DNA of 64,000 nucleotides from Salpingoeca rosetta (lineage: Eukaryota > Protista > Choanoflagellata). Shown piece after piece: positions 3,793 through 61,431 of the stretch; position 1 is the stretch's first letter; the number at the start of each line of letters is the position of its first letter. The stretch covers positions 1,585,160 through 1,649,159 of the forward strand of contig JAWQFM010000013.1 of assembly GCA_033442325.1 (NCBI GenBank). The letters run 5' to 3'. Under the pieces are notes generated by a model, which did no database searches, was not told the origin of the DNA, and worked only from the letters and a program-made list of their open reading frames with translations. The translations under genes and the position numbers were made by a program.

Positions 3793-5141
3793 GTGTGTCC
3801 GGCGTGTCGCCGTGATTATTGCGTGGTTTCGGAGCGAATGCACAAGCATATCAGCGACATGACCGTATCCCCCCATTGGCTTCAACAGCCAGCTTGCTCC
3901 AGCACACCCACACCAACCCCACCTCAATCCCACCTTCCTCTTTTCCTCTCAACCGCCACAACTCGTGCTGGGGCCACCTGCTGCGAAGTGCAATCTGTGC
4001 GCTGACGTCACCAAAGTCCACGCCCGTGAAGTGCGATGCGCGGTGCCCGTAGAACTGGGGCTTGTACTCGTCCAGCCACACCTGCACAGCGGAGAGGGGG
4101 AAAGAAGGGGGGACACGTGCCAAATCAACGAGGAATGGAGGGGCATGACAGACAGACGGACAAGTAGACAGGCAAGAAGACAGGCAAGAAGAGCGTGGAC
4201 ATACACAACCCCACATATACACACACATACAAACACACACACACACACTCGCACAAACACACACACACATGCACACACACGCGCGCGCGCGCACCTCGAC
4301 GATGCGGAGGATGTTGCGGGTGTAGCTGGCAGCAACGCCATCCGGAAACAAATACGGGTGCTGCGGCATGAACATGTGTGCAACGCGCGAGCAGGGGTGG
4401 ATCACCGCCCGTCCACTGCACATCCACACCTTGAACGACAGCTCAAGGTTGTCGCCGCCCCAGTATGTCAGGCCCTGTTTCGCCCGCGTGGCAGTGAATA
4501 TGTGTTTGAGTACGTGTGCATATGTGTGTGTGTATGTGTGTGTGTGTGTGTGTGCATATATGTGTGTGTATGTGTGTGTGTGTGTGAGCATGGTGATAAA
4601 GCAGGGCGCACGCAGGGGAAAGCAAGGATGCAGGTTGAGAGGATGCAGGGTTGAGTGTGGCGTGGAAAGGGTCCTATAGTCAAGTTGAACACTTCACTCA
4701 GCAAGAAGAACAAACAGCAACAGCACTCCCCATGCGCTCACGTCCATGCTACGTTTGCACGTGTTGACAACACGTTGCCACAGACCTGATCAAACCCGCC
4801 AAGGTGCTCAAGTGTTGTTCCTCGAATGGCAACGACACCCGGCAGCACGGGCGATGGATATGCGACACCACCACCACCATCACCACCAGCAGCAGCACTG
4901 CGGTGCTGTACAGGTATGCTCAGCCACTTGAAGAGCATATCCCAGCGAAAGCCGGCGATCATGGCTGGGGAGCGGCGTATGGCGAGGGAGGCCGGGTCAA
5001 TGGCATCGAGTACAGGGGATATGGCGTCGGCGGGGTGCGTCGTGACGTGTGCCAGCAGTGGCGGCAGCCACCCGTGGCCAACCTCAACATGCGCATCCAG
5101 GAACACAAGCACCTGCACACGTACACGCGCGCGCGTGTGGG

Positions 5142-5180
<39 letters not shown>

Positions 5181-5538
5181 ATGTGTGTGTGTGTGTGCAA
5201 GTGAGTGAGCAAGTGACAGACAAACACATGCTTGCATGGAGACGGGACAGAGAACATGAAGAAGCACGAGTCACAGGCTGCACTGCACGACTGGGGTGAT
5301 TGATGCCATCAGTCGATGCAAGGCAGTCCCAGCCACGCCGTCACAGCCATGCGCACATGACAGGTGTTGCCACCTACATCGCCAGCAGATGCTTTGACAC
5401 CCAGCATGCGCGCGCGTGCAACACCGAGGCGCTCATCGCTGCGAACAAACTGCACGGGCACGCCAACGTGGATACCGTCAAACAGGCTGCTCAAGTCTGC
5501 AGTGGCATCACACCACCAGATGGCATTGTACGTACCGC

Positions 5539-5571
<33 letters not shown>

Positions 5572-6443
5572 TGTGTGTAAGTGTGAGTGTGTTGAAGGCT
5601 AAGAAGACGAGGAACACGGCAGCTACGACGATGGCCAAACACACTCACTCACTCACGCACTCACACACAATCACACAGTCACACAACTGCAAATCACACA
5701 CTCACAAACACATACTCATCACTTCCGCACATGTGTGTGCGCGAAGAGATAACACTGACAACGTGTCTGCTCACCTGTTTGAGAGGCGTCGTCAACGACA
5801 ACAATGTCAGACAGCAAGGCCATCGGAGTGCGTGCGAGGACGCTGGCCACTGTTCGAAACAACGTCGTTGGCTCCTCGTTGTGTTGAATAATAATCACAC
5901 TCGCTCTCAACTCTCCATCATATGGAACGTTCGAGCACCTGCGTGTGTTATGGGTCAATGCAACGCGCCAACAACGGTGAGCATGTGAGAATGGTACTGT
6001 GACACACATTCACAGACACCACACACACACTCACAGACACCACACGCACAAACACACATACATACACACCACCACACACAAACACACACCACACCACCGA
6101 GCTTCTTTGTAGCACAACGCTGTACAAGGTCACACATTCCATATGCTGCACATCTCCCCCCCCCCCCAAGTACGTACTGGTTGCCGCGAAAATCTGGCGT
6201 GCTTCTCAAGACCCCAACAGCTTGGCTCTGACTCAGATCCAACGCGCCATACTGCAGAGCGGCGCTGTCCGCAGTGTGTCGTGCGCGAGTGCTCTGCTTC
6301 CACGCATCGAAGTGCTGCTTCAGTGCTGTGGCCCTGGCAAGCTCATCATCCAAGCCCCAGTGCTCCCGCCACAAGTACGTCGCCAACACCAACACCAATA
6401 CAAGTTGCACCGCAGCCACTGCCCAGCGCCAAGCACAGCGCAT
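2971..6443 (-). CDS. GALNT: Polypeptide N-acetylgalactosaminyltransferase (GT27) with C-terminal ricin-B lectin; about 8 exons
   Basis: N-terminal TM ([19 protein letters not shown]). Exons carry [52 protein letters not shown] (DxH), [36 protein letters not shown], and ricin [20 protein letters not shown]. Last exon ends MVWSFSFAL* at 2971. Confidence 0.93.
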
Positions 6444-15410: not shown

Positions 15411-16595
15411 TTTGGCATCGACAGTGAGTGCGTGCCATCCCTCCAGCGAGAAGGCCCAAGCGTGTCTCTCCTCGCCTGCTTTCTTCACCACACGCCATCA
15501 GCTCCCCAATCTCAGCTGGCTGGATGGATGTTGATGTGGATTGGATGTGGATGAGATGTTCATTTTCTCAGCTGTCATCCAACGCACCAAGAACCACCAA
15601 GACCCCCCGAGTTGAACTGCGTGACTTCCAGCCACCCGCCAGCGCACACTGTTTCTTCTTCTTCTTCTTCCTCTTTTGTGAAGCAAGGTGTTGCACCGAC
15701 AACCAGCCATGCGCGTGTTGGTGTTTGCGGTGGCGTCGTGCCTGCTGCTTGCTGCGGGCTCGATGGCTGCCGATTATCAGCGGCACGAGTACACGACGGC
15801 TTATCAGCCCAAGCACCAGGAGTACACGACCAAGCACATGGAGTACACCACCGCTTACGAGGCACCCAAGAAGGCTTACACGACCGCGTACGTCGCGCCC
15901 AAGCAGGAGTACACGACGGCTTACGAGGCACCCAAGCAGGAGTACACCACCGCTTATGAGGCACCCAAGAAGGCTTACACGACCGCGTACGTCGCGCCCA
16001 AGCAGGAGTACACCACGGCTTACGAGGCACCCAAGCAGGAGTACACGACGGCTTACGAGGCACCCAAGCAGGAGTACACGACCGCCTACGTCGCGCCCAA
16101 GCAGGAGTACACCACCGCTTATGAGGCACCCAAGAAGGCTTACACCACCGCCTACGAGGCACCCAAGCAGGAGTACACGACGGCTTACGAGGCACCCAAG
16201 CACCAGGAGTACACCACGGCTTACGAGGCACCCAAGCAGGAGTACACGACCGCTTATGAGGCACCCAAGCAGGAGTACACGACCGCCTACGTCGCGCCCA
16301 AGCAGGAGTACACCACCAAGCACATGGAGTACACCACGGCCTACGAGGCGCCCAAGCAGGAGTACACGACGGCTTACGAGGCACCCAAGCAGGAGTACAC
16401 CACCAAGCACATGGAGTACACCACGGCTTATGAGGCACCCAAGAAGGCTTACACGACCGCCTACGAGGCACCAAAGCACCAGGAGTACACGACCGCCTAC
16501 GAGGCACCAAAGCACCAGGAGTACACCACGGCTTACGAGGCACCAAAGCACCAGGAGTACACCACCAAGCCCGCCTACCCACGCTACACCCAGCA
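15411..16595 (+). repeat. Segmental duplication copy A (about 300 bp upstream plus CDS); direct repeat of ~58959-60052
   Basis: Near-identity starts at tttggcatcgacagtgagtgcgtgccatcc in both copies and continues through the (TTC)n tract, the signal peptide and KPAYPRYTQ. Confidence 0.92.
15709..16595 (+). CDS. Signal-peptide Tyr/Thr-rich tandem-repeat protein, copy A (3' end lost in gap)
   Basis: Signal MRVLVFAVASCLLLAAGSMA, then about 20 AY(E/V)APK(Q/HQ/K)(E/A)YTT units with KHMEYTT spacers. No intron in the visible part. Synonymous third-position variation between units supports coding. Confidence 0.88.
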
Positions 16596-16695
16596 NNNNN
16601 NNNNNNNNNNNNNNNNNNNNNNNNNNNNNNNNNNNNNNNNNNNNNNNNNNNNNNNNNNNNNNNNNNNNNNNNNNNNNNNNNNNNNNNNNNNNNNN
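16596..16695. other. Assembly gap (100 N), truncates repeat-protein copy A
   Basis: N run. Confidence 1.
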
Positions 16696-16996
16696 GCATG
16701 TCGAGTGGTCCGAGAGATAGTATTTCGTGATTGCTTTATTAATGCATCCCTGGCTGGGTAGCGAGAGTGCTCGTTTAGTCGGGGCGGCACGGTCTTGAAT
16801 GTGATGTGAACTTGGACTCGAATATCCCATTTATGTGTAGGTGAAGGGTGGTGACAAAACTCACGGGGGATATCCCCTCCGCTCAAACATAAACATAGCA
16901 CGTTATATAACATTGTGGTACCATCGCTCAGCCCTCATTAATTGTGGGGATGGGCACCGCTCGTTGCAAAGAACCCCTGGTTTGTACACTACCCAC

Positions 16997-17104
<108 letters not shown>

Positions 17105-17697
17105 CGCATGTGCTCAGCACAAACAAAAAGATTGTTGTTGTTGCGTTCGCCGCCTACGCTTCGTGTGTTTTCTCTGCCCCCTTCCTTTCTTTCTCCATTT
17201 CCCCCATTCCCACACGCACATCCCCACTGCACTCCGCGACATCCCTCTCTTCTTCCCCGCGTCTCCCCCTCGCCCATGCCAAGCTCCATGATGGTGAACG
17301 AGAACACGTACCTGCTCCCGCCCCCGGCCGCGTCGCGAGGTATGCCAGCCACCCACCACCACCACCCTTGGGCAAGCCGCTGGCTGGTGTTTGCTGGCCG
17401 ATATGCATGACGTCAGTGCGTTAGACTGTTTTGGCTTGGTGACAGGCTAGCCTGCACAACACGGCCGTGCGAGAGAGTGTGCGTGCGTGTGCTCTCCACT
17501 GCTCCTCGCCCTTCCTGGCTTCCCCTTCTGTCTGCCCTCCTGGTTTCCCTCTTCGCTACCTGTGCCAGCCCGCGCGGAGGTTGTGCTGTGTGGTCCCTCG
17601 TAAGTACGGGCCGGTGTGTTGGTCCTCAGCCAGCTGTGCGCTCACTGTACCCTGCCCCTCCTGCCCCTCCTGCCCCTCCTTCTCCTTGGCTGCAACC

Positions 17698-19634
<1,937 letters not shown>

Positions 19635-31883: not shown

Positions 31884-31960
<77 letters not shown>

Positions 31961-32738
31961 CACACACACACGCACACACACACACACACAAGCAAATTGG
32001 AAGTTGACGCGTGAGCGTGGAAGCAATGCACAGCACGATTGCAGCTTCTAACGTCCACACATTGGCATGGGAGAGGGCCACAGGTGCGCTGTTCCAAGGT
32101 ACAACCACAGCAGAGCAGCGACAGAGCGGTGGGGACAAACAAAGGGGCGACATGCGAGTGGTCCCGCACCGTGACGGCCTTTGTGTCGTGGTTCTTTGGG
32201 TTGGTCATGATCCAGCAGAAGATCTTGCCGCCTTTGCCATTCATGGTTTCGTAATTGTACATGGGGCGGGCCTGCGTGCAAGCACAGAGCGTGTGAGGAA
32301 GGCATGAGTGCGGGCGAAGCATGCCAAGAGCACATGGCGCAGCTGCAACTCATGGCAGTTGGTGGACGGTCCGTCTTTGACATGAAGCATGAAGCATGAA
32401 GGCATGTCACGTGTGCAGAAACACAGTTACGCCAGCACACAGACACACGAACAGACGCACAGACACAGACAGACCCACATGTTTTGCATGTTAGATTTAC
32501 TGGCCATTCTCTGCACTTGCGCTCACCTTTGGTTGCTTCTTGCTGATGGCCACTTCTGTGACGGTGCGGGGTGTGTCATGAAACAATGCATTGAAGTGCA
32601 TGGCCTGTCCAAACAGCACATAAAGGACAACACACGAGGCACGAGACCCCGTGGGTGCGTGTGAGGGAGGTATGAAAGAGAGGTGAGGGGGTTGGAGTAC
32701 ATCTTGGCTCAGAGGTGTTGGTTGGGCTGTGCATGTGA

Positions 32739-32771
<33 letters not shown>

Positions 32772-33378
32772 CATGCAAATCTTTTCATGTTACCTGCAGG
32801 CACCGGTGCTGGCCGCATTCGTGGAGCCGAACACTGGCCACGTCGTCGCCAAAGGGGCTGCGGAAGAGTGGCGAAGGGGGGAAGGAGACACATGAAATGA
32901 CAGCGTGAACTGTGGCGTTTCCGCACCCAGGAAAGCGATATGCACGCCACAACACGCAACAACATGCCACAGACACAGACGCACGCACACACGCATGCAC
33001 ACAAACACACACCTTGGTGCTGTGAGGCACAAGCTGGTGCCGACAAGCTGCACAGATCCGGTGAGGTTCCAGGCATACTCCTTTGCAGGGAGAAAATCAA
33101 ACTTCTGGCCTTTTGCTTTGTCATCACAAGGCTGCACCCTCAAAATGCCGCCTTTCTCCACGCCTGTCAGAGCAGCATGTGCCATTGATAGCATGAATGC
33201 ACAAGCCGGAGCGATCACAGCAGAATGCAATCCAAACGAACCACGCAGCACGAGTCACAGCACGGGGGCAAACGCATGACGGACATGCCCACATACACAG
33301 ACACAGATACAGACACAGGCACACACGCACAGACAGACAGACAGATAGACAGACACGCACAGACAGATAGCTAGACAC

Positions 33379-33432
<54 letters not shown>

Positions 33433-34433
33433 CATTCACAGACCCACACACCCTTACCAGTTGCATCGATGCACCAGTTCTCGCTGGTTTGGATCTGCTG
33501 GTGTGCGGTGTACTTCCAAATCTGCTTGGGCTGCTTGCGGTTGCAGAAGTAGACGATGAGGCGCTCTGGGTCGTAGCCGTCAACGCAGTCCATGTTGCGG
33601 GTGATGCGGATTTGCCCTGGCCGCATGGGCTGACCGAGGTCGTAGAACTGGTCGCGATCGTCATCAGCACTACCAGCCTCTTCGTCAGCACTGTCGCCGC
33701 CCTCCTCGGCTGCGGCGGGCGGCAGGCCTTCTTCCTTGTGGATGCGCTGGCTGATGAGCTTGTGCAGCTGGTGCAGTAGTTGGTTTGTGTCAATCTCACC
33801 ATGCTCACCAAGCGGTTCACCAAAGCTGCTGTGCACGCCAGGCCGCGAGTGCGACATGTTTTGCGACTGCATGCGATTGAGGATGGTGCGGCTCAGCGTC
33901 TCCGCCCGCTCCAAGCTTTCCAGCGTGCGGTCCAGCTGTGCCGTGTGTGTTGTATTGTGTGTGTTGTGTTGCATGTGTTGTATGTGTGTGTGTATGTGTG
34001 TGTGGAAGTGAGCACTGGCCACTCATTCACGCATGCATGCATGTAGTTGTTGTTGAGCAAGGAAGCAAGGAAGCAAGGAAGCAAGCAAGCATGCATGCTG
34101 CTGACGAGTGCACCGTACAAAACAAACCAGCATCACCAACAAAAGCAACGCGAACCAACAACAACAGCAGCCAACTATCTAAGTGTGGTAACAACGCACC
34201 CTTGTTTCGAGCTCGGAGACTTGGGACTGTGCACGGTCGAGGCGAACGGGAGCCAAGGCACCTGCCCCGGCAGCGGCGAGAGTGATGGTGTCATCGCGCT
34301 CTCGCAACGATGCACCGCCCTGCGCTGCAGACAGGGATGCTGTTGGTGGATACACTGACCATCGGCCCAGTGTTACCAGCAGCACCACCAAGCAACCGCC
34401 AGTCAACACAACCAGCCACCTGTTGTTGAGCAT
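30041..34433 (-). CDS. C1GALT1: Core-1 beta-1,3-galactosyltransferase (T-synthase)-like GT31 with a ricin-B domain in the stem
   Basis: Type II TM at the N-terminus. Catalytic segments [106 protein letters not shown]. Ricin-like [33 protein letters not shown]. Confidence 0.88.
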
Positions 34434-36834: not shown

Positions 36835-37310
36835 TGCATGGTGGTGGTTGATGCATGGTAGTGGTTGATGCATGGTGGTGGTTGATGCATGGTGATGGTG
36901 GTGATGGTGTCAATGGTGTCTGGCTGCGCACAAGGACAGTTGCGTTTGAGGGTTTGCCAGTTCACGGGGTGATGGGATTTCTTTTTGTTGGATGGATGGT
37001 TGTTTCGGATTGTTGGCTCGTGTTGGTACACACGCGGCGTGCCCGCTTTGCCTGCGCCGTGTCTGTCTGGCATGTGGGTTTGATTGGTGATTGTTATTGT
37101 TGGGGGTCTGCATGCACGCACGTTGGAACAGATGAAACACACATAACACAGGTGAAACAACACGACACAAGACACCAGCAAACACAGACGAGGCGAGAGT
37201 TCGTGTGGAACGAAAAGTACGCAAACAGTGTGTGTGTGTGAAGGAGAGAGAGGCAGATGGATTCCTCGTGTCACAAACAAAACTAAAGCAGCGATGGCAT
37301 TCACCACTTG

Positions 37311-37399
<89 letters not shown>

Positions 37400-37412
37400 G
37401 TCATCGTCATCG

Positions 37413-37415
<3 letters not shown>
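37311..37415. repeat. (CAT)n/(CGT) trinucleotide microsatellite
   Basis: Seen directly; abuts the inferred DUS2 stop. Confidence 0.95.
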
Positions 37416-46525: not shown

Positions 46526-46571
46526 TGATGATGACGACGATGATGATGATGACGACGACGACGACGACGAC

Positions 46572-46666
<95 letters not shown>
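46523..46666. repeat. (TGA)n/(CGA) trinucleotide microsatellite
   Basis: Seen directly; begins at the OGG1 stop codon. Confidence 0.95.
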
Positions 46667-47080
46667 GCACGTGGTGTCCGCGCTGTATGCCCAGGCAACA
46701 GCTGCCACTTGTGTTATGTGACGTGACAGTTGCATCACTTGCCCAACCAGCACTCGCACCTGACTTCCTCCATGTCTGGTTTGATTTGAAACGTTTAATA
46801 ACCAAACAATGCGGGTGTAGATGTACACAATGTTACATTAGCTCGACACGTGTGTGTGTATGTACAATAATTGGACATGGAAGGTGTCGAAGAGTAAACG
46901 CCAGCCACTCATCACCAGCTGCATCAGCACATGAGTGACCAGTGACTGATCACAAGCACCCACCTCCAACTGCTCCTTGCCATGCCACCTTGGCCAATCA
47001 CAACTTGATGTTGCGATTCGCACGCAAGTCGCAAGGCACCACCACCACCACCACTCTCGTAACCACAGCAGCCACCACGG

Positions 47081-51882: not shown

Positions 51883-52804
51883 ATGACAATGACGATGATG
51901 ATGCAGCAGCGAGGCGTTCACCTAGTTGTGGCGGTGGCTGTGGCCATGCTCGCCGTGGCGCTGTCGCAGGTACATGCGGTGCAACCTGTCGCCTGGTTGT
52001 GGTGTGGTGTATTGGGATTACATTCCCGCACATTTTGTGTTTTGCCCAAGTCATACACACACATGCACACACACATGCACACACATGCACACACACATGC
52101 ACACACACATGCACACACACATGCACACACAAATGCACACATGCACACGCGGACACCAACCCACTCTTTCTCCCACACATGCACACACAAATACACACAC
52201 GCTCACACTGACACATACACACAATTCTTTCTTTGACTTGTGGTAGGTGAATGCTGCGGAGAGGTGTTCCGAAGGTGCAAAGTGTCCCAGTCATAACACA
52301 TGCTGCAAGATGGACGGTGGTCGTTTCGGTTGCTGCCCTTATGCCAACGCCACATGCTGTAGCAACTTTTGCTGCCCTCCCAACTCGCAATGTGCTGAGG
52401 ATGGCCGCAGTTGCGACACGGGACCAGGGCCAACCCCAGTGAGTCCAACATCATCCACAACAACCTCGGAACCCGCCACCAAGAACGACTTGCTGCACAA
52501 CAACCGGCAGCACGAGCTTGTGCCCGTGACGCCGGCAAGCCAGCGTTCGGCTCCATCTCACAATGCCAAAGACAGCCTGGAATCCTCCCCGCGCGAGCGA
52601 CGACAAGACGACTTTGGCGTTGACCAGCCCAATGCCATCGTCTGCCCCGACGGCTCGTACTGCCCAGACTTCAACACGTGCTGCCAGATTCCGGGCGGCT
52701 ACGGCTGCTGCAGCCTCAGCGACGGCGTATGCTGTCCAGACGGTGCCTTTTGCTGCCCCAGTGGCATGACCTGCGGGCAGAGGAGCTGTTATGCCGAGGA
52801 GTAA
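51883..52804 (+). CDS. GRN: Secreted progranulin-like protein with two granulin modules
   Basis: Signal-peptide exon (..HLVVAVAVAMLAVALSQ), intron to 52246, then two 12-Cys C..C..CC..CC..CC..CC..C..C modules joined by a P/T/S-rich linker containing RERR. Confidence 0.9.
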
Positions 52805-57005: not shown

Positions 57006-58958
57006 AAGAAAGAGCACGTCAGCCCCAAGCACACACGCGCACACAATTGAAATGCGCACCAAAGTCAGGGAGTGGAGGGGGTTGGCGAGGGAAGGGGAAA
57101 GGGAAGGGCGACACGCCAGGACATGGTTGCACCCCAAGCGCAGAGCCACGTTCTATGGACGCGGGTGCGGCATATCGATCGCCCAGTTGAGGGACACACA
57201 GCAACTGCGGGACGGGGGAGGGGTCGGAAAGGTAGATCACCCAACGTATTGTTCGCGTGTGTGTGTGATTGTGGTGGAGGGTGAGTGTTGTGTTGGTATT
57301 GGTGGTGGTGTGACTGGTGGCGTGAGTAAAGTTGGTGTGAGTGAAGTTGGTGTGAGTGAAGTTGGTGCTGCGTTGCATTGAGCAGGAGACAACACACACA
57401 CACACACACCCACACACACCCACACACACCCACACACACACACACACGCACGCACGCACGCAGAAACAGACAACGAAGTTCATCCAACACACACATGCAA
57501 ATGCACACAAAGGAGGAAGCGCGGGTGGACACATGGTGGTGGATCCACATTGGTCGAGGGCATAATCTTACCCCCAGTGATGTGCAGTTGCTCGCTTGGC
57601 TAGTCCTTCTGTGTGTTCCAGGTTTGGTGTCCGGTTCGCAACCTTTGGTTGACGGAGATTTGTCGTGTTCCGATGAGCGCAGTCGCCTTCATCTGATCCG
57701 AAACACGTCCTTTGGACACGCGGCAGGCAGCCTTGTCAGCATGAGCAGGGGCGAGGAGTCAACTTCAAGAGAAAGTTGTCGTGGACGTCGTGGCCTTGCT
57801 TGGCACATGCACACACACGCACACACGCACACGCACACGCGCACGCGCATGCGAGATGCGCTCATCCATGTCGGTTCAGCACCAGCATCATCAGCGGTTT
57901 GAGGAGAACGTCCATTGGGAGCAACGACATCAACACGATGGGTTGGTCGGTTGGTGGGCGGTTGGTGGGGGAGACAGCGATTTCAGCGAGCTAGCGAGTG
58001 AGCCGAGTGAAGGCGTTAGGGGAACGTTGGAGACGGGGAGGTGGGATGGTGGAAGGGTGATGAGACAACAAGCCAGCCAATCCAGCCAAGCCAGCCAAGA
58101 CGAGGAGAACAAGGTCGTTCGTTCTCTTCTTCCTTCCGCTCTGACTTGTTTTGCTGGTGCGGTTGTGGAGGATTACTTGAAGATTTACACAAAACGGCGA
58201 TCGGAAGGACAGCACGAACAAACAACCAACACGCACCAACAAGCAAGCAACAAGCAGCAGCGCTTCTTGAGTTGCAGTTGTGTGGGTGATGTGTGGGTGA
58301 TGTGAAGCATGATGGTTCGCACACACATGCATACACATGCACTGATGGTGTGTGCACATTCACATATCCACACAGAGCAAGCAAGCCAAGTGGAGATGAT
58401 TACAACAAAAGAGAAGAGCAGCACGAGTGCATTCAATCTCACACACGCACACGGTGCATCGACGTGGTTCGTACGAACAGCTGCAGGCTGAAGTCAGCAG
58501 CTGATAAAGGAACGCAGTGCTGGCTGAAATGAAGTGCGTGCATGTGTTGAATGCGTGTTGTGGTGTGTGTGGTGTACGTGCGTGTGTGTAGCGTACGTGC
58601 GTGTTTTGAGTGCACTTGTGCTCTGTACTCTGTGTTGTTTCTTCATGCAGGTGCAAGCAAACACGCAAGCAGGCCATTTCTTCTCTTCATGCCCCACACT
58701 CTTCCTCTCACTCTCACTTTCACTCGCACTTTATCACTATGTACAAACTCACACGGACCTTCATTCGCTTGCCCCCTCTTTCTCATCACTTGCCCCCTCT
58801 TTCTCATTCACTTTAGATTGATGGCCTGGGAAACGTGCACCAGGCATGCGCTTCATTTCCCACTCTCGTACACACCAGAACTCTAATAGAGCTCTGTTTG
58901 AACCGGGGTGCATAACCCGCAAAGCGCATTTTGAAAGGGAAACCGGCAACCACACACT

Positions 58959-60052
58959 TTTGGCATCGACAGTGAGTGCGTGCCATCCCTCCAGCGAGAA
59001 GGCCCAAGCGTGTCTCTCCTCGCCTGCTTTCTCCACCGCACGCCATCAGCTCCCCAATGTCAGCTGGCTGGATGGATGTTGATGTGGATTGGATGTGGAT
59101 GAGATGTTCATTTTCTCAGCTGTCATCCAACGCACCAAGAACCACCAAGACCCCCCGATTTGAACTGCGTGACTTCCAGCCACCTGCCAGCGCACACTTC
59201 TTCTTCTTCTTCTTCTTCTTCCTCTTTTGTGAAGCCAGGTGTTGCACCGACAGCCAGCCATGCGCGTGTTGGTGTTTGCGGTGGCGTCGTGCCTGCTGCT
59301 TGCTGCGGGCTCGATGGCTGCCGATTATCAGCGGCACGAGTACACGACGGCTTATCAGCCCAAGCACCAGGACTACACGACCAAGCACATGGAGTACACC
59401 ACGGCTTACGAGGCACCCAAGCAGGAGTACACGACCGCCTACGTCGCGCCCAAGCAGGAGTACACCACGGCTTACGAGGCACCCAAGCAGGAGTACACCA
59501 CCGCTTACGAGGCACCCAAGCAGGAGTACACCACGGCTTACGAGGCACCCAAGCAGGAGTACACGACCGCCTACGTCGCACCCAAGCAGGAGTACACCAC
59601 GAAGCACATGGAGTACACCACCGCCTACGAGGCACCCAAGCAGGAGTACACCACCGCTTATGAGGCACCCAAGCAGGAGTACACCACCAAGCACATGGAG
59701 TACACCACGGCTTATGAGGCACCCAAGAAGGCTTACACGACCGCCTACGAGGCACCCAAGCACCAGGAGTACACCACGGCTTACGAGGCACCCAAGCAGG
59801 AGTACACGACCAAGCACATGGAGTACACCACAGCTTACGAGGCACCCAAGCACCAGGAGTACACCACGGCTTACGAGGCACCCAAGCAGGAGTACACCAC
59901 GGCTTATGAGGCACCCAAGAAGGCTTACACCACTGCCTACGTCGCACCCAAGCAGGAGTACACCACCAAGCACCAGGAGTACACCACTGCCTACGAGGCA
60001 CCAAAGCACCAGGAGTACACCACTAAGCCCGCCTACCCACGCTACACCCAGC
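58959..60052 (+). repeat. Segmental duplication copy B; direct repeat of 15411-16595
   Basis: Shares the ~300 bp upstream region and the coding 5' end with copy A, with scattered substitutions and a different repeat order. Confidence 0.92.
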
Positions 60053-60462
60053 ACCAGGAGTACACCACACGCCCCGTCTACACCACGCAGCCACCCGTCT
60101 ACACCACACAGCCACCCGTGTACACCACAGAGGCCGTGTACACCACACGCCCCGTGTACACCACCAAGCCACCCGTGTACACCACCAAGCCACCAGTCTA
60201 CACGACCAAGCACCAGGAGTACACGACGGCCTACGAGGCGCCAAAGAACGAGTACACGACGAAGGACGCCTACGCCTACGCCGACAACAACTCTGGCGCC
60301 TCTGGTGCTGGTGATGCCGCTGCAGGCCTCTCTGCGGGCGCCATTGCCGGCATTGTGGTTGGCGCGCTGCTGCTTGTCGGCGCCGTTGTTGGTGGCGTCT
60401 TCTTCGCCAAGCACCGCGCCAACGCCTCTTCCTCCTCCTCCGCCGCCGTCGAGTCCGTCTAA
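59260..60462 (+). CDS. Intronless type I membrane Tyr/Thr-rich tandem-repeat protein, copy B (complete, 400 aa)
   Basis: Signal peptide; about 16 AYxAPK..YTT units; then (K/Q)PPVYTT and RPVYTT units; TM GAIAGIVVGALLLVGAVVGGVFF followed by KHR; short tail ending ESV*. Confidence 0.92.
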   Translation: MRVLVFAVASCLLLAAGSMAADYQRHEYTTAYQPKHQDYTTKHMEYTTAYEAPKQEYTTAYVAPKQEYTTAYEAPKQEYTTAYEAPKQEYTTAYEAPKQEYTTAYVAPKQEYTTKHMEYTTAYEAPKQEYTTAYEAPKQEYTTKHMEYTTAYEAPKKAYTTAYEAPKHQEYTTAYEAPKQEYTTKHMEYTTAYEAPKHQEYTTAYEAPKQEYTTAYEAPKKAYTTAYVAPKQEYTTKHQEYTTAYEAPKHQEYTTKPAYPRYTQHQEYTTRPVYTTQPPVYTTQPPVYTTEAVYTTRPVYTTKPPVYTTKPPVYTTKHQEYTTAYEAPKNEYTTKDAYAYADNNSGASGAGDAAAGLSAGAIAGIVVGALLLVGAVVGGVFFAKHRANASSSSSAAVESV

Positions 60463-61431
60463 GCAGCAGCAGTAGCAGCAGCAGCTGACAGCAGAGGCAT
60501 CACCAGCAGCAGCGACAGAGGCAGTGCCGGCTGCTGCTTTGCTCTCTGTGACGACGACGACGACGACGACAAAGATGATGGGATGATGACCATGCTTGCT
60601 TGCTTGCTTGTTGCACCATTTTGTTCATCTGCGTTTCTTTTCATTCACCTGTCTGTTTGACCTCCTAACACCACCACCCTCCTTCCTTGCTTTGCTGTCC
60701 TGCTGTGCCAGCCATGACCGGTTTTGTTTTTGTTTACATATTTCACCTCCCTACCGCAAAAGACCTGGGTGTCTGCTTAACCCCCCTGCTGTTGTGAGGC
60801 GTTGTCTCTCTGTCTTGTCCTGTCCTGTGTGTGAAATGATGATGGCTGCTGGTCCTGTGTCGCTTCATGCCTCCAATAAACGAAACCAAGCGTTCATGTG
60901 GAGCGTTCATGTGGTGCACAGTGGAACTGCCGAAGCATCCGCAGACCACACCCCCCGGCCACAGCGGCCAGCGCAGCAATGACAGCAACAACGGCACTGC
61001 TGCCACCGCCGCTGCCACCGCCACCACCGACAACGATGAGGGACAGCCACGCAGCGCCCCAGTGACCTCACGAAGCCCCGGTGGCCCGGCCGCAACAGAG
61101 CCCCCTGCAACTGTCTAAGCGACAGTCGCAGCACTACACATGAGCCTCGCACCGAGGCACTTGGTTTCTATCTATCTATCTATTGATTCACTTTTCTTTC
61201 TGTCTATGAGGCGCGTGCTCTCACACACATTCACCCATACGCACCGCTGCCCTTTGTTTTGCCGCAATTGCCTTCCCCATCTTTGAGCGCTGGGAGCAGT
61301 GTAAGATTTCAGCGAGTTTTCCCCAATAAACACACAGCCCAAACACACACACACACACACACACACGCACGAATTCAAATTTTTGGCGGCAGCCGAAATT
61401 CATCATTGTGTTTGTTTGGTGGGCAAGGACG

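Follow-up and report, generated by a model that had tools for sequence, protein, structure and literature searches.

What is encoded by the repeat-filled open reading frame (ORF) near the end of a 64,000-bp stretch of the Salpingoeca rosetta genome, and is it a gene at all? The stretch, referred to as the window, comprises positions 1,585,160 to 1,649,159 of contig JAWQFM010000013.1 (GCA_033442325.1) and corresponds to about 1489876-1553875 of supercontig GL832967.1 in assembly GCA_000188695.1. All coordinates given here are those of the window. The ORF runs uninterrupted from ATG to TAA at 59260-60462 (+) and specifies 400 amino acids (aa), with an array of short cassettes that end in Tyr-Thr-Thr (YTT), after which it is called the YTT gene. 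Experimental work on the origin of animal multicellularity relies mainly on S. rosetta as a model, in which rosette formation, clumping and attachment are governed by the glycans and matrix of the cell surface; to our knowledge, little has been established about the proteins that carry these glycans or about what the theca is made of. With moderate confidence, the YTT protein is read here as a species-restricted, mucin-like type I glycoprotein of the cell coat or extracellular matrix (ECM), with an array that evolves by gain and loss of units.

Four other frames are open across the repeat array as well, both strands included, so that an open frame is by itself no proof of coding. This openness and the lack of a public protein record would suit a locus without any functional gene, i.e. 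a GC-rich minisatellite open by chance in several frames, or a precursor that is cut into repeated peptides. The 59260 frame stands apart: it is the only one in which an ATG is followed by a signal peptide and, at the end, by a membrane helix. Its GC content is 0.55, 0.47 and 0.82 at codon positions 1, 2 and 3, respectively. In pairwise comparisons of the eleven-residue units from the YTT gene and its paralog (n = 32), third positions differ by 0.31 on average and first and second positions by 0.07-0.08, an approximately fourfold excess. All 32 units have Ala1, both Tyr and both Thr, while the codons for these residues vary, and the peptide sequence has been kept between two diverged arrays. 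Judged from these alignments of units, the repeat peptide is under purifying selection, the codon-position variation being its signature. Because of the frame with start, signal peptide and transmembrane helix (TM), the GC content at third positions (GC3) and the third-position excess, the YTT gene is very probably a real gene used in the 59260-60462 (+) frame, and the minisatellite or precursor has very little probability. A peptide precursor, which the sequence-only reading had named as its less likely alternative, appears unlikely also in view of only two dibasic (KK) sites, of units not flanked by KR or RR, and of the membrane anchor.

The complete coding sequence (CDS) of 400 codons plus stop (59260..60462, +) requires no intron. 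Annotated neighbor genes are intron-rich, e.g. with 400 aa spread over 3.5 kb, and as far as the ORF can tell the YTT gene is intronless among them, as had been noticed before. A candidate polyadenylation signal AATAAA, recognized from the letters alone, is located at 60875..60880 (+), approximately 413 nt past the stop codon. The CDS is preceded by an approximately 300 bp block (58955..59259, +) that probably holds the promoter and the 5' untranslated region (UTR). Upstream of the CDS and in another frame, an ATG at 59057 opens a frame of 472 codons through the repeats; it stems from a T-to-G difference versus the paralog (ATCTCAG against ATGTCAG). This ATG could mislead longest-ORF annotation or serve as an upstream ORF. 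Of the words sampled from 58900-61000, between 19% and 64% are present in twenty S. rosetta sequencing runs from at least five studies, and no run exceeds this share. Such a content fits transcript-sized pieces rather than genomic DNA, with the kind of library a guess.

The predicted protein has two hydrophobic segments only, aa 1-23 and aa 352-385 by hydropathy. The first contains the signal peptide, aa 1-20 (MRVLVFAVASCLLLAAGSMA, then AD; 59260..59319, +), with a cleavage context ...GSMA|AD suggested by the -3/-1 rule. The main array, aa 21-255 (59320..60024, +), consists of 11-, 12- and 7-residue cassettes ending in YTT and shows a 30-aa higher-order unit. It is followed by a junction unit, KPAYPRYTQHQEYTT, at aa 256-270 (60025..60069, +) and by a Pro-rich block of R/Q/K-(P)PVYTT hexa- and heptads at aa 271-316 (60070..60207, +), a 21-bp array at the DNA level. 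The last two cassettes and a Gly/Ala/Asp/Ser juxtamembrane stalk occupy aa 317-355 (60208..60324, +), with a single YAY and the single NxS sequon of the ectodomain. The TM spans aa 356-383 (60325..60408, +) and carries four GxxxG motifs, starting at 356, 360, 364 and 374. A cytoplasmic tail of 17 residues, KHRANASSSSSAAVESV, completes the protein (60409..60462 with the stop codon, +) and ends in ESV, which matches the class I PDZ-ligand pattern (Ser/Thr-x-hydrophobic) as a pattern only.

The cassettes were counted as follows: AYEAPKQEYTT eight times, AYVAPKQEYTT and AYEAPKHQEYTT three times each, and AYEAPKKAYTT twice; among the shorter units KHMEYTT and K/QPPVYTT four times each, KHQEYTT and RPVYTT twice each; plus a few singletons. 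YTT occurs 33 times; in 2000 shuffles that preserve the composition, it occurs 1.6 times on average and never more than 7 times. Tandem Repeats Finder (TRF) reports periods of 33, 66, 87-90 and 21 bp in the gene. The ectodomain (aa 21-348) is composed of 20.4% Thr, 17.1% Tyr, 13.4% Ala, 11.6% Glu, 9.1% Pro and 9.1% Lys, with a net charge of -8. The sole Cys of the protein is residue 11, within the signal peptide, so that the ectodomain is Cys-free. The signal peptide, the YTT cassettes, the GxxxG-type TM, the ESV tail and the Cys-free ectodomain had all been described in the sequence-only reading, and the ORF, TRF, hydropathy and shuffles bear them out.

From these topology signals the YTT protein is a single-pass type I membrane protein of the secretory pathway with a repeat ectodomain. 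A cleaved signal peptide would bring it into the secretory pathway, and a low-complexity, Cys-free ectodomain of approximately 335 residues would be held at the cell surface by the Gly/Ala-rich helix and the 17-residue tail. With its Thr-Thr pairs O-glycosylated, the protein would most likely act as an extended component of the cell coat or ECM, i.e. as a species-restricted functional analogue of membrane-tethered mucins outside any known family. O-glycosylation is inferred from the composition, like the Tyr sulfation, DOPA or dityrosine cross-linking, theca location and PDZ binding suggested by the sequence-only reading, and the surface location and coat function are proposed along with it. 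Membrane-tethered mucins (MUC21/epiglycanin, MUC15 and podoplanin-type proteins) likewise combine a signal peptide, a Thr-rich, Cys-free tandem-repeat ectodomain, one TM in type I orientation and a short tail. Unlike these, the YTT protein has 0.6% Ser and 17% Tyr and neither a SEA nor an Epiglycanin_C domain, and there is no sequence homology between them. Compared by ESM features, the YTT protein lies nearest to three membrane mucins, MUC21, MUC22 and MUC15 (scores 0.75-0.82), a level that provides leads only.

An initiating enzyme of the required type exists in S. rosetta. A gene annotated with 531 aa at about 4738-6443 (-), approximately 9 kb upstream of the first of the two YTT genes in the window, combines Glycos_transf_2 (GT2) and Ricin_B_lectin (ricin-B), the architecture of polypeptide N-acetylgalactosaminyltransferases (ppGalNAc-transferases); the GT2 match was confirmed on ORF 4738-5283 (-). 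The lectin jacalin prefers core-1 O-glycans. In favor of the mucin-like reading, jacalin-binding glycans are reported from the cell poles and the rosette ECM of S. rosetta (PMC6322860).

Several observations weigh against the mucin-like coat glycoprotein. Ser is nearly absent from the ectodomain (0.6%), Ser, Thr and Pro together make up only about 30% of it, and the Tyr content of 17% is atypical for mucins. Thr-Thr near Pro had been called a typical ppGalNAc-transferase context; this holds better for the PPVYTT block than for the main array, where it is weak, and of 67 Thr just 11 are followed by Pro at +3. AlphaFold2 run on the single sequence draws the array of 11-mers as one long helix and not as a disordered stalk. 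No protein record of the YTT gene was found either, which leaves it without proteomic or annotation support.

The abundance of Tyr raises a different possibility, namely a cross-linkable structural or adhesive scaffold, in which surface tyrosinases or peroxidases would oxidize the ectodomain Tyr to 3,4-dihydroxyphenylalanine (DOPA) or dityrosine, and the protein, membrane-tethered at first, would be tanned into the theca or the rosette or attachment matrix. Tyr (17%), Lys (9%) and Pro (9%) are frequent in the ectodomain, Tyr is invariant at both positions in 32 of 32 eleven-residue units, one YAY adjoins the membrane, and the K/QPPVYTT heptads resemble, from general knowledge, the PPVYK units of plant proline-rich proteins (PRPs). 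The ectodomain is, however, net acidic (-8), whereas mussel foot protein 1 (mfp-1) and PRPs are basic; YxY occurs only once and SPPPP not at all; a permanent TM anchor is unusual in wall or adhesive proteins; and the Pfam and HMMER searches revealed no homology to any such family. A scaffold of this kind is considered unlikely. A more specific form, in which both YTT genes would encode the membrane-primed substrate of a choanoflagellate tanning system, with Tyr-rich, O-glycosylated ectodomains that surface tyrosinases of S. rosetta itself would oxidize and that would become cross-linked into the theca or basal matrix, is considered quite improbable. If true, the closest relatives of animals would have evolved, independently, a counterpart to the chemistry of plant walls and mussel byssus.

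The known systems of this chemistry can be compared in detail. Plant PRPs and extensins (PPVYK, SPPPP, YxY) share with the YTT protein the PPVY of its heptads, abundant Tyr, Lys and Pro, and the secretory route. They differ in that the YTT protein has just four PPVY units, no SPPPP, a single YxY (the YAY) and a membrane anchor; its main array of AYEAPKQEYTT units has no counterpart in these proteins, which belong to a different lineage. Arrays of PPVYK/PPVEK or SPPPP together with YxY/VYK, by which PRPs and extensins are recognized, are not present, and the likeness, if any, is convergent. In mfp-1 (AKPSYPPTYK decapeptides, DOPA) the tandem units are short as well and each contain two Tyr and one Lys besides Pro and Thr, but this protein is strongly basic, while the YTT ectodomain is acidic to neutral, TM-anchored and without homology to it. 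The basic, Lys-rich AKPSYPPTYK consensus is replaced here by the unit AYEAPKQEYTT and a charge of -8.

Rosetteless, an ECM C-type lectin of S. rosetta with mucin-like Ser/Thr repeats (PMC6322860), is from the same organism, secreted and predicted to be glycosylated in its repeat region. It carries C-type lectin domains and no TM, in contrast to the YTT protein, which lacks a folded domain.

The helix drawn by AlphaFold2 is the starting point of another reading, that the 11- and 7-residue units, with 11/3 and 7/2 periodicities, form a long and possibly oligomeric alpha-helical stalk with Tyr2 and Tyr9 on one face, dimerized via the GxxxG helix. In three of five models the helix extends over aa 2-254 with a pLDDT (predicted local distance difference test) of 60-79, positions 2 and 9 lie approximately 33 degrees apart in the geometry of an 11/3 helix, and the TM has its four GxxxG motifs. 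Each 11-mer contains, on the other hand, Pro plus a beta-branched Thr-Thr pair, and the register is broken by 12-, 6- and 15-residue units. The remaining two models drop to a pLDDT of 30-36, a single sequence without alignment depth being the input, and single-sequence models often over-predict helix for repeats rich in Ala, Glu, Lys and Gln. The model is too weak for fold searches, and a rod of this type is regarded as very unlikely.

Does the YTT protein have relatives elsewhere? It belonged to no Pfam family at the gathering threshold. Mucin-like (PF16058) reached 22.6 bits versus a cut-off of 28.7, Mucin (PF01456) 18.5 versus 34.7, and Podoplanin (PF05808) 17.9 versus 30, the last with a match restricted to the stalk and TM at aa 326-382; a VSP match of the TM region was sub-threshold as well. 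Searches of NCBIfam and PDB yielded nothing relevant. An exhaustive HMMER search of 1.84 billion representative proteins returned 56 proteins at E <= 0.001, of which only two, the paralog among them, reached E <= 1e-30. The 54 matches other than the paralog and a metagenome protein (P0002) were rejected as relatives; the 24 sequences that were read have other repeat units, such as NANYTTMFQGM, DILPSQEGTT, PIETTQN, EAPVDTT and PRRYYRTRYYA. Ten matches whose source was looked up came from molluscs, a sea urchin, a fish, a yeast, Diplonema and unnamed assemblies; the named sources are Nucella, Strongylocentrotus, Colossoma, Biomphalaria, Komagataella, Elysia, Patella and Diplonema, and no named choanoflagellate protein was among these ten. 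By their repeat units, the matches other than the paralog are compositional or convergent. The family had been called unrecognized before, and a match to a characterized family was found neither in Pfam, NCBIfam and PDB nor by HMMER. Apart from look-alikes, the YTT protein is apparently restricted to the species, without relatives outside S. rosetta.

A striking look-alike is KAJ9437162.1 (P0008) of Diplonema papillatum, with approximately 19 PDYEAPESNVTT 12-mers in which Y-E-A-P ... T-T are spaced as in the YTT protein and with a Gly/Ala-rich TM (...GAIA.IV...) after the repeats that resembles the YTT-protein TM. It belongs, however, to a euglenozoan and has a long cytoplasmic region, and only 6 of 11 residues agree per unit, a likeness multiplied by the repeats (E 1.9e-9). 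This is best read, from the aligned units, as convergence or chance. P0002 (JGI [Joint Genome Institute] metagenome 3300081713, L002:524-1627 +) is a secreted protein of 367 aa with KPPAYTT and KPSAYTT heptads between Cys-rich modules; its end carries APPKYTT units, and the heptad type is the same as in aa 271-316 of the YTT protein. Heptads of the xPPxYTT type like those of this block occur in several marine sequences (P0002, P0011, P0040).

The paralog is located in the same window, approximately 43 kb from the YTT gene. It comprises 15411..16595 (+), with the common upstream block, a signal peptide 100% identical to that of the 59260 gene and 24 cassettes; its ORF, 15709-16595 (+), is cut by a 100-N assembly gap at 16596-16695, and its TM and tail are absent from the assembly. 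The upstream blocks (58955..59259 and 15411-15708) are approximately 97% identical, and their identity sets in abruptly at the 5' edges, 15411 and 58955, which precede the ATG by about 300 bp. The gene was duplicated along with approximately 300 bp of upstream DNA, the two arrays then diverging by gain and loss of whole cassettes in the manner of a variable number tandem repeat (VNTR). In one-letter cassette codes, the order is s m k v a k v a a v k a h a a v m a a m k h h h J ... in copy 1 (the paralog) and s m a v a a a v m a a m k h a m h a k v q h J ... in copy 2 (the 59260 gene). The copies have blocks of cassettes in common and differ otherwise in their order, as expected of arrays altered by unequal exchange since the duplication. 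DNA past the gap (16696-17290) shows no similarity to the 3' region of the 59260 gene except for a CA microsatellite, so that the 3' end of the duplication falls inside the gap. The sequence-only reading had described a single gene; that description stands, while the paralog, the assembly gap and the mis-fusion described next had escaped it.

In the public protein set the paralog is found under another name. The one strong match of a word search was EGD74065.1 (XP_004993627.1, F2UB52; P0001), named 'aquaporin', with a length of 538 aa. Its first 283 residues come from 15709-16557 of the window and the remainder, the major intrinsic protein (MIP) part, from separate exons at 17286-19631, past the assembly gap. 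The paralog ORF runs beyond the annotated 'donor' with more cassettes, then the junction unit KPAYPRYTQ, then the gap; the first nine residues of the junction unit of the 59260 gene are identical to these last readable residues. The aquaporin gene (17277..19631, +) has its own in-frame ATG at 17277 (MPSSMMVNEN...), and a Pfam search of the 400-aa YTT protein gave no match to the MIP domain (PF00230). MIP channels have a cytosolic N-terminus. A true fusion is implausible because a signal-led ectodomain would directly precede this cytosolic N-terminus without a membrane span between the two. On the evidence of these coordinates and frames, EGD74065.1 is almost certainly a chimera of the YTT paralog and an aquaporin gene, an artefact to which the gap gave rise. 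What the true 3' end of this two-gene family looks like can be seen in the complete 59260 gene.

The 59260 gene itself looks unannotated in the public protein set, within the searches performed. Its exact 400-aa product had no match in a collection of 15 billion proteins. The word search among proteins of 220-700 aa returned just the paralog and one metagenome protein, with no second S. rosetta protein; the C-terminal 110 aa, used as a query among proteins of 60-192 aa, matched no fragment; no protein record was found for the 472-aa alternative frame from the 59057 ATG; and the downstream 534-aa ORF, used as a query toward local gene calls, returned nothing. A literature search found no paper with the accession numbers of the gene or the paralog and no description of the YTT repeat motifs. 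In the searched text of the Fairclough 2013 and Leon 2025 supplements, no entry with a PTSG identifier was found under 'aquaporin', 'mucin' or 'Major intrinsic protein'.

The public protein set seemingly lacks one copy of a duplicated surface-protein gene and hides the other in a mis-named 'aquaporin' model. With one model missing and the other chimeric, transcriptomics and proteomics based on the reference annotation will overlook the two genes or assign them wrongly. The chimeric record and the missing gene model are concrete by-products of the analysis, and there is a practical benefit in correcting both models. With its unusual Tyr/Thr chemistry, the YTT protein is a cheap, testable candidate for knockout and tagging, which are routine in S. 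rosetta.

Some other features of the window were noted. At 32530-34022 (-), a sub-threshold ricin-B match was obtained on ORF 33255-34022 (-), and among ten ORFs there was no Pfam match of the T-synthase/Fringe type. An ATG-started ORF at 52310-52804 (+) has a dense CC...CC...CC pattern of Cys at its start (MDGGRFGCCPYANATCCSNFCCPP...), which is reminiscent of granulin-type modules. Long CA/TG microsatellites are located at 899-1017, 16990-17100, 18817-18928 and 31885-31996, in introns and intergenic DNA. Apart from an inverted repeat pair at 37302-37414 and 46549-46676, they are the only self-matches of the window besides the YTT duplication.

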